A program made the position numbers and the translations under genes. A stretch of 63,864 nt of DNA, the filler included, from Perkinsus chesapeaki ATCC PRA-425 (Eukaryota; Protista; Perkinsozoa): assembly GCA_013115145.1 (NCBI GenBank). It is 13 parts of 13 records of this genome, joined end to end, with 100 filler letters (N's around TTAATTAATTAA, not from the genome) between each part and the next. Parts side by side here need not be neighbours in the genome. Positions count along the whole stretch, not along the records: positions 62,654 to 63,864 come from JAAPAO010002100.1; 12 more parts are not named here. One strand, written 5' to 3'. Below are positions 62,654 through 63,823 of this stretch, one piece after another (positions within the stretch are counted from its first letter, which is position 1; every line of letters begins with the position of its first letter). The notes under the pieces are model-generated. The model saw only the letters and a program-made list of their open reading frames with translations. It made no database searches and had not been told where the DNA came from.

Positions 62654-63823
62654 AATGCTTCTCGAGGATGGCACACTGCCCCGGGCGCTGGTAACATTGA
62701 CTCCATCGCCAACTACGGCCCCTATCATCATGTCACTATAGATGTGGTAAGCTTGGGCGAAAAGACTCATGCGCTCAGTTGTCAGTGTCGACTGACTCGG
62801 CATGTAACCTGGCAACATATTCCTGATGAGACGACCCAGTCAATACTAGATGCTCTTTGTCGAGCTCAAGTTCGTGCTGGCCCGTTTCGAGTCATATTTT
62901 GTGATAGAGCCTCGTACTTCAGGAGTTCCGTCTTTAAAGATCAGGTCGCCCGCCGTCTTGGTGCTACGGTCCATCTACTATCCCGACATGCTCCTTGGGA
63001 GGGTAGTCATGAGCGTCACCATGGAGTTATGTGTGCTCTCCTCCGCAACAGTCTACGTCACTGTAGCGGACGATTACAACCACTATCAGCTCAACAGCGT
63101 CAAGATTTATTTGATCGGATATGCCTGGTGCACAACAATCTACCTCTTGGCAGTTACCTGTGGCTGAACGGCACTCAACTTCCTGTATGTCCTGAACTAC
63201 TCTGTAATGGTCGGCTCCGTTCACTCAATATGACAACAATGATGTTCTGCAACAATGTCTTACCCTATCGTGCAGCGCAAGCGGCACAAAAGTCCTTTTT
63301 GTCCGAAGGTTGGGCCCTTATCAAGCGTCGTAACAGCTCTGTGAGGCCAAGTACCAGCGTGGCTCCCGATTCCTTCGACCCTGGTAGGACCGTGCTCATC
63401 TATTCCCCCGCTCCGCGCAAGCTAGCCAAGAACTTCACAGTTGCTCATGTCAGTCAGAAGATCTCCCGTAACCGCGTTGAAGTTGTTCTACCTACTGGTG
63501 TCAAGACCGTTGAGAATATGTACAACGTGCTTCCTATTGGTCGACATCCTGAAGACTATAAAGCTCGAGTCTGTGGACCCTCTCTTATTGGTATGACCGT
63601 TCGAGTCTGGATTGCTGATGACAGTGGTAGCGGTTCCTGGTATGATGGCTACGTCTCCGACCAGTCTAGTGACTTGGAGGTCCTAGTAAACTGGAAAAAC
63701 GGTGACCCGGAGGAATGGCTTGACTTGTCCGTTGAGCGTTGGCAGCCCTCTCCTGGTAACTTGGCCGGTGTTGGCACACCGCCAGGGGGGCGTGTAGAAT
63801 CAGATGAAGATTGCATTCCATGA
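62654..63823 (+). mobile_element. LTR-retrotransposon integrase with a C-terminal Tudor-like domain
   Basis: The frame is open from the gap: HHVTIDVV (D), IFCDRASYF (D), GSHERHH (E), an SH3-like module, then LIGMTVRVW...SWYDGYV...NWKNGDPEEWLDLSVERW. Confidence 0.88.

Follow-up and report, generated by a model that had tools for sequence, protein, structure and literature searches.

A Tudor-type domain carried beyond the canonical C-terminal domain of a Perkinsus LTR-retrotransposon integrase

The clearest natural cases of chromatin-guided integration are fusions between an integrase and a chromatin-reader domain. In chromoviruses, a chromodomain sits on the integrase C-terminus and is presumed to tether integration to marked chromatin, and to our knowledge chromodomains were, until 2025, the only reader domains known to be fused to integrases in such guidance. 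A short contig of Perkinsus chesapeaki, a parasite of oysters and clams, raises the question of whether another reader fold can occupy the same position. In the window (the whole stretch of DNA analysed, 63,864 nucleotides), the first-pass annotation had read the end of a retrotransposon integrase on this contig as a Tudor-like domain in place of a chromodomain, and had further stated that it knew of no description of such a lineage. The questions taken up here are what the domain is, what kind of element carries it, and what it might do for that element.

The piece concerned, positions 62654–63864, is an entire 1211-bp contig, and it is the 3' end of an LTR-retrotransposon pol gene whose integrase has an extra, Tudor-type domain. 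A single frame-1 ORF on the plus strand, as are all features given here, extends from the contig edge as far as a TGA stop at 63821–63823 and comprises 389 codons (the translation of 62654–63823). The deposited partial protein FOL47_003567 (P0001) agrees with this translation apart from a 13-codon gap. Its gene model drops window positions 62747–62785 (VSLGEKTHALSCQ), directly past the first catalytic Asp, as an intron, and this intron is probably spurious because the family alignment retains the residues concerned. The peptide on which the Tudor reading was founded (LIGMTVRV...LSVERW) is found exactly in the translation as L311–W363, bases 63584–63742; the end coordinate given for it earlier, 63745, overshoots by one codon. 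Pfam scans of the window protein and of its last 95 residues give nothing useful, so that a family profile was needed for recognition. As for transcripts, no run recorded as RNA carries the stretch, two small presumed-RNA runs contain next to no words of it, and the one presumed-RNA run examined by contigs has none on it.

The catalytic core of the integrase occupies residues 1–185 of the cut ORF (62654–63208), as assigned by translation, profile, AF2 and Foldseek. When a 32-sequence family profile is compared with the integrase of prototype foamy virus (PFV), with an E-value of 8.5e-11, D30 (62741–62743), D84 (62903–62905) and E120 (63011–63013) fall on the catalytic D/D/E residues, and the D84–E120 spacing of 35 residues makes this a D,D(35)E triad. 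The Pfam rve family leaves the window copy unmatched and reaches its relatives only below threshold. An AF2 model of all 389 residues (mean pLDDT 80.9) predicts, in order, an RNase H-like core to ~185 with pLDDT >90, a helix at 204–229, an SH3-like barrel at 246–294 and a second barrel at 315–365, with a flexible linker separating the two barrels and a disordered tail after the second. Consistent with this arrangement, Foldseek matches the 389-residue model to the PFV, HIV, RSV and Ty3 integrases at E-values from 2e-12 to 7e-9.

The core is joined to the C-terminal domain (CTD) by the long linker helix, residues 204–229 (63263–63340), which AF2 predicts at low confidence (mean pLDDT ~50–60). 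It is followed by the SH3-like β-barrel, residues 243–295 (63380–63538), as delimited by the AF2 strands at 246–294, the profile and conservation; V247, L248, K256 and N291 are near-invariant here. A profile of 21 full-length polyproteins from the family aligns to residues 57–377 of the PFV integrase chain, a range that we take to include the PFV CTD, and because the profile reaches that far, residues 243–295 are assigned as the ordinary integrase CTD. With the canonical CTD thus accounted for, the second barrel is an additional, fourth integrase domain, and it sits past the SH3-like CTD, at the place where chromoviruses carry their chromodomain, just as the first-pass annotation had proposed. 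The N-terminal HHCC zinc domain falls outside the contig edge in the window; in full-length relatives its residues are invariant (H1060, H1065, C1094 and C1097 in the A4 alignment), with sub-threshold matches to Integrase_H2C2. With a DDE triad in a predicted RNase H-like fold, a modelled SH3-like CTD, and the HHCC motif in its relatives, the window protein is an integrase as judged by sequence and model.

The 3' end of the contig speaks to the kind of element to which this integrase belongs. A polypurine-tract-like run, AGGGGGG (63784–63790) followed by CG, adjoins the 5' side of the LTR (63784–63792 overall), and its CAGGGGGGCGTGT motif also occurs in the P. olseni copies L005 and L006. The 3' LTR opens with TGTAGAATC... 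and is cut by the contig end (63793–63864). Contigs from three sequencing runs, bearing three different upstream sequences, begin to match at 63793–63797, and depth rises across the boundary from ~340 to 1300, a three- to five-fold increase across runs; these runs represent two samples from two studies, and the assembly may itself derive from these samples. Because contigs with unrelated flanks join at this point and depth climbs there, 63793 is placed as the 5' end of the LTR. The pol ORF reaches its stop codon ~28 nt into the LTR, and the disordered C-terminal tail, residues 367–389 (63752–63820; pLDDT <50 for 371–389), is encoded by sequence shared with both the polypurine tract and the LTR's first 28 nt. 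Compared with a P. olseni copy, the tail gives a dN/dS of 0.94 with a low dS of 0.16, which points to constraint at the nucleotide (cis) level.

The window contig is without a 5' LTR, and a complete pair is seen in a related P. chesapeaki element in L003. There the LTRs are 174 nt long and 98.9% identical, with a TGG-initiated PBS-like site, TGGCGACACC, past the 5' LTR and a G-rich PPT-like run, GAGGGGGGC, before the 3' LTR. A possible solo LTR, a third LTR-like copy (L003:9027-9188) with 90% identity, precedes the 5' LTR by 640 nt. Two 142-aa genes that flank the L003 element (9312–9740 and 18011–18439) were considered as LTR ORFs and rejected, being host paralogues with 45% identity. A P. 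marinus copy, L002:5124-11523 (GG671975), consists of three ORFs and has a RING-finger gene on one side and a dynein heavy-chain gene on the other. Around it no LTRs were found at seed 12 and a minimum length of 40; either age or short LTRs might account for this. The PPT-like run and LTR start in the window, at a boundary supported by contigs, the full LTR pair of the related L003 element, and the profile matches to PFV integrase and the Ty3 polyprotein bear out the earlier assignment of the element as an LTR retrotransposon.

Relatives of the window protein were gathered by exhaustive HMMER search, which yielded 102 matches, among them proteins from three Perkinsus species (P. olseni, P. marinus and P. 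chesapeaki) and many from metagenome contigs. Many of these are polyproteins of 800–2030 aa whose C-terminus aligns through the Tudor domain, and full-length members of the family measure 1300–2030 aa. The family has the PR-RT-RH-IN domain order, with a consensus that reads DxGAG protease, reverse transcriptase (RT) including FVDD, RNase H, HHCC, DDE, SH3-like domain and Tudor. The lineage is hard to see with standard tools. Pfam gives only sub-threshold matches to RT_RNaseH_2, Integrase_H2C2 and rve across the family and none to RVT_1 in the scanned polyproteins and ORFs, and a phmmer search of the PDB with one full-length relative found no match, so that an alignment profile was required. 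The profile of the 21 full-length polyproteins, by comparison, also matches the Ty3 polyprotein and retroviral reverse transcriptases. A word-based search with the polyprotein alignment produced one more Perkinsus relative, the rest of its matches being canonical Gypsy and BEL elements that were used as tree references. A quick RT+IN tree rooted on BEL/Pao recovers the family as one clade (SH-aLRT 96) that is sister to the canonical Gypsy elements sampled. The references comprised 21 Pfam-recognised Gypsy elements, three of them with chromodomains, retroviruses and Copia being absent, and the placement is provisional because this sampling is thin. Provisionally, then, the element is a very divergent Ty3/Gypsy-like LTR retrotransposon of a mostly unannotated lineage.

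How widely the extra domain is held within this lineage can be judged from an integrase tree of 35 rows. The domain is present in 17 of them, spread across deep branches, and this, together with the polyprotein C-termini that align through it, confirms its presence in other family members. Ten rows stop no more than 21 residues past the SH3-like domain; the remaining eight have other tails, two of which are weak Tudor matches. Some of the ten short rows may be truncated gene models. Because these 10 of 35 integrases end right past the SH3-like domain, the Tudor domain is not obligatory in the family.

The domain itself, residues 308–366 (63575–63751), is a Tudor-type barrel of ~60 residues, as assigned from AF2, profile, Foldseek and VIA-align. 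The AF2 model of the domain (pLDDT 86.9) predicts five strands (E16-22, 28-38, 43-48, 55-58 and 64-66) and no helix. A single-sequence search connects it with PDB entry 7de9 at an E-value of only 0.04, and a 41-sequence domain profile (A2) matches the same entry at 2.9e-7 across the full domain length, followed by the AGDP3 Agenet and the PCL, KDM4A, SETDB1 and UHRF1 Tudors. Structural comparison of the model leads to the same place, with 32–33% identity in the alignments to 7de9: chain 7de9_A is the best match both in Foldseek (TM 0.75 by target, 32% identity) and among the 48,161 chains compared by VIA-align (Z 7.6, with 55 of 58 residues superposed at an rmsd of 2.0 Å), where the Spindlin and PHF19 Tudors come next. 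An ESM Atlas shape search places plant PDS5 Tudor clusters at the top, and language-model neighbours fall in Tudor_3, Agenet and PTM_DIR17_Tudor clusters with scores <0.9, which serve as leads only. In a Pfam scan of the 41 aligned domain sequences with E-values up to 0.1, Agenet matches 16, Tudor_5 matches 8 and PTM_DIR17_Tudor matches 7; the window copy of the domain, taken alone, has no Pfam match.

The structural match alone would be weak, because small β-barrels reach Z 5–7 against many unrelated folds. Here the five-strand, ~60-residue barrel that characterizes the Tudor/Agenet royal family is found together with significant sequence similarity to its members, and by both sequence and model the segment is a genuine Tudor-family domain, with the PDS5C/RDM15 Tudor as its nearest solved relative. 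The PDS5-type fold proposed at first pass is thereby upheld, PDS5C/RDM15 ranking first by profile, Foldseek and VIA-align; the Foldseek comparison of the predicted model, in particular, returns this Tudor as its best match, and neither a chromodomain nor a plain integrase SH3.

Given such a relative, the question becomes whether the residues with which it reads histones are also present. Entry 7DE9 shows the Tudor domain of Arabidopsis RDM15/PDS5C in complex with H3K4me1. Its cage is made up of W616, Y623 and Y641, with D643 and D645 coordinating the monomethylammonium group and E647 and Q654 binding H3R2, and mutation of cage residues strongly reduces binding. These positions were mapped onto the window by a single-sequence alignment to 7de9, and their conservation was counted over 42 domain copies from the family matches, most of them at integrase C-termini. 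Two of the three cage positions are aromatic in the window, Y330 for Y623 (Y or F in 38/42 copies) and W347 for Y641 (W, Y or F in 40/42). The third is aliphatic, with I320 standing for W616 (I, V or L in 31/42; F in 6/42). Among the polar contacts, D643 corresponds to N349 (N in 16/42, D in 13/42), D645 to D351 (D in 26/42), E647 to E354 (E in 29/42), and Q654 to E361. By this alignment the peptide-contacting surface is largely retained, while the cage is without one wall. The aromatic-cage candidates of the first-pass annotation thus survive in part: Y330 and W347 are aromatic and conserved, and the position of W616 is not aromatic in the window or in most copies. Because one RDM15 cage aromatic is missing, methyl-mark reading stays conjectural. 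Nor is the domain classed as an H3K4me1 reader, since the residue pattern of the PDS5C/RDM15 type is broken by the loss of W616 and by the replacement of D643 with Asn; on sequence and model alike, PDS5C/RDM15 is its closest relative and only that.

The reading that we favor, with a probability of roughly 0.55 and largely by analogy, is that the Tudor barrel fused past the integrase CTD tethers the intasome to a histone tail and so biases insertion. The barrel would hold the intasome to nucleosomes as the chromovirus chromodomain is presumed to do, or the LEDGF PWWP domain of which HIV makes use. Its ligand would be a histone tail, the likeliest candidate being the H3 N-terminus in a low-methylation state; such binding would bias the sites at which new copies insert. 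Y330, W347, N349/D351 and E354, all conserved, are the counterparts of RDM15 residues in contact with H3K4me1 and H3R2. As the third cage aromatic is missing, the mark that is read, if any, probably differs from that of RDM15.

The incomplete cage, with its aliphatic residue at the W616 position in most copies, also feeds the most serious of the alternatives, which we consider doubtful: that the Tudor fold has been kept without methyl-mark reading, as a second SH3/Tudor-like module of the intasome for nucleic-acid binding or multimerisation, a role that integrase CTDs play, or as a binder of unmodified histones or DNA. The structural neighbors at Z 5–6, which include KOW, the UvrD/PcrA Tudor and a PWWP with ssDNA, are nucleic-acid- or RNA-polymerase-binding barrels and would suit such a role. 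However, the best-conserved surface residues (Y330, W347, N349/D351 and E354) are the very ones that correspond to the H3-peptide contacts of RDM15, and the closest sequence relatives of the domain are histone readers, both of which argue against this alternative.

Methyl-arginine cages that contain Asn are known, and SMN and TDRD Tudors bind methyl-arginine proteins. By analogy, the Asn at the D643 position (N349, with N in 16/42) recalls such cages, and SMN- and TDRD3-type single Tudors are found among the structural neighbors. From these observations one could argue that the domain links the integrase to a host protein other than a histone, whether methyl-arginine-bearing, cohesin- or repair-associated, for targeting or for escape from silencing. 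This we regard as improbable: the sequence similarity to SMN/TDRD Tudors is far below that to the histone readers PDS5C, Agenet or KDM4A, and there is no known partner. Far less probable again is that the segment is a divergent chromodomain or an ordinary integrase SH3-like CTD. What recommends that idea is a set of weak, partial phmmer matches of 18–20 residues (one strand) to cpSRP43 chromodomains, and the chromo-barrels of MRG15 and RBBP1 at Z 6. Against it, the AF2 model has five strands and not three and lacks the C-terminal helix, the Pfam Chromo family matches 0 of the 41 aligned domain segments, HP1-type chromodomains and retroviral integrase CTDs are absent from the best 50 VIA-align matches, and the canonical CTD is already assigned to residues 243–295.

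Comparison of copies indicates that the domain is maintained. In the integrase region the window and a P. olseni copy share 76% nucleotide and 86% amino-acid identity, with dN/dS of 0.06 overall, 0.08 in the SH3-like domain and 0.15 in the Tudor domain; on these ratios the Tudor domain is under purifying selection. A second P. chesapeaki copy, recovered from public runs of the same organism, is ~87% identical over 62654–63752, differing at 138 of ~1100 positions, and 35 of the 40 listed differences (among the 138), all in the integrase core, fall at third codon positions. This copy has a 1-nt deletion at 63560, immediately upstream of the Tudor domain, and because of it would be frameshifted. 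That deletion and the mere 1.2 kb of contig are what could be said for a decayed pseudogene or chance ORF with a non-functional domain, the least credible reading of all given 389 open codons, the dN/dS values, the third-position differences, and retention of the domain in family copies that share only 30–47% identity.

Domains of the same type were also met outside this family. P0028 from Phaeothamnion confervicola (1482 aa) has 20 tandem copies of the Tudor/Agenet-type domain and P0043 (2503 aa, ENA) has 13; both arrays score above threshold with the Pfam families Agenet, Tudor_3, Tudor_5 and TUDOR, and proteins of this kind could be cellular sources of the domain. On an ENA metagenome contig (k141_1175817; L007:1-2683), a canonical rve integrase (P0086, with a match that clears the Pfam threshold) has the same Tudor-type domain at its end. 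Immediately upstream of it lies a gene for a PIF1-like/SF1 helicase and not for a reverse transcriptase; this may be a DNA element, perhaps Polinton-like, that uses the same reader domain. On a tentative reading, the presence of this Tudor type on at least one canonical rve integrase as well would mean that the reader domain has been captured repeatedly by mobile elements. In P0079 (L008:6001-8831, ENA contig ctg47362l), a Tudor-type domain at residues 271–334 lies upstream of RVT_1 in the same ORF. This order is unlike that of the Perkinsus family, and could be a Copia-like order or that of another retroelement class.

The lineage shows that a second royal-family fold is in wide and stable use at the chromodomain position in a group of alveolate parasites. 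Its nearest relative reads gene-body H3K4me1, not heterochromatin. The system would provide a simple, testable model of how a transposon chooses safe or favorable sites in compact protist genomes, and might be put to use for targeted integration in Perkinsus, genetic transformation of which is described according to a preprint (10.1101/2021.06.11.447996).

In its architecture the window domain is likewise a single five-strand barrel of ~60 residues that aligns over its full length with Arabidopsis PDS5C/RDM15. It retains equivalents of Y623, Y641, D645 and E647, with N at D643, and departs from the plant protein in having Ile for W616 and a β1–β2 loop three residues longer. A Tudor of the PDS5C/RDM15 type is also carried by plant MSH6. 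In these cases the domain belongs to a regulator of cohesin or to a mismatch-repair protein, whereas in the window it is attached to a retroelement integrase.

The closest published parallel is Gypsy-10_Ec32 of the brown alga Ectocarpus, an element whose C-terminal Tudor domain is, according to its authors, the first reported in any TE; they also note a homologue in Tribonema minus (PMC12477816, Genome Biol 2025). Its publication disposes of the supposition that such a lineage was undescribed, and since this 2025 report the Tudor-integrase concept is no longer unprecedented; our literature search found no further report of a Tudor-TE fusion, and none for Perkinsus. Both elements are LTR retrotransposons with a pol that ends in a Tudor-superfamily domain, and the 54-residue Tudor segment of Gypsy-10_Ec32 aligns only moderately to the Perkinsus family profile, with an hhalign probability of 76% (E 2.3e-5, 33% identity). 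By eye, however, the integrase motifs of the Ectocarpus sequence differ from those of the Perkinsus family and a spacer of >100 residues separates its integrase region from the Tudor, which, in the hhalign alignment, has no aromatics at the positions of window W329-Y330. The best blastp match reported for Gypsy-10_Ec32 by its authors is Gypsy7_DR (PMC12477816). Supplementary file 2 of the same paper holds further pol sequences, Gypsy-11_Ec32_pol and the pol entry before Gypsy-8, in which Tudor/Agenet-like C-terminal stretches can be seen by eye (for example, VGARLWYKARDGLWWTGRI...SYIVRFLDD). The hosts are a stramenopile in the one case and an alveolate in the other, and from the sequences the two fusions look independent, with Perkinsus appearing to represent a separate alveolate lineage. 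Tentatively, and with rather less confidence than histone-tail tethering as such, one may go further: a deep LTR clade of perkinsids and of the protists behind the related metagenome contigs, nearly invisible to Pfam, might have gained a PDS5C-type Tudor independently of Ectocarpus and use it to direct integration to a specific state of the H3 tail.

Chromoviruses and other chromodomain-bearing Ty3/Gypsy lineages offer a further comparison. They and the Perkinsus family have both added a royal-family chromatin-reader domain to the C-terminus of an LTR-retrotransposon integrase, but the fold in the window is a Tudor barrel in place of a chromodomain, and in the RT+IN tree the Perkinsus family forms a clade of its own (SH-aLRT 96), apart from the 21 Gypsy references, the three chromodomain-bearing ones included. 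HIV integrase, in turn, is tethered through the PWWP domain of the host protein LEDGF/p75. There, as is proposed for the window, a royal-family reader connects the intasome to histone marks; the difference is that HIV relies on a host cofactor for its reader, whereas the Perkinsus element would have it within the integrase polypeptide itself.
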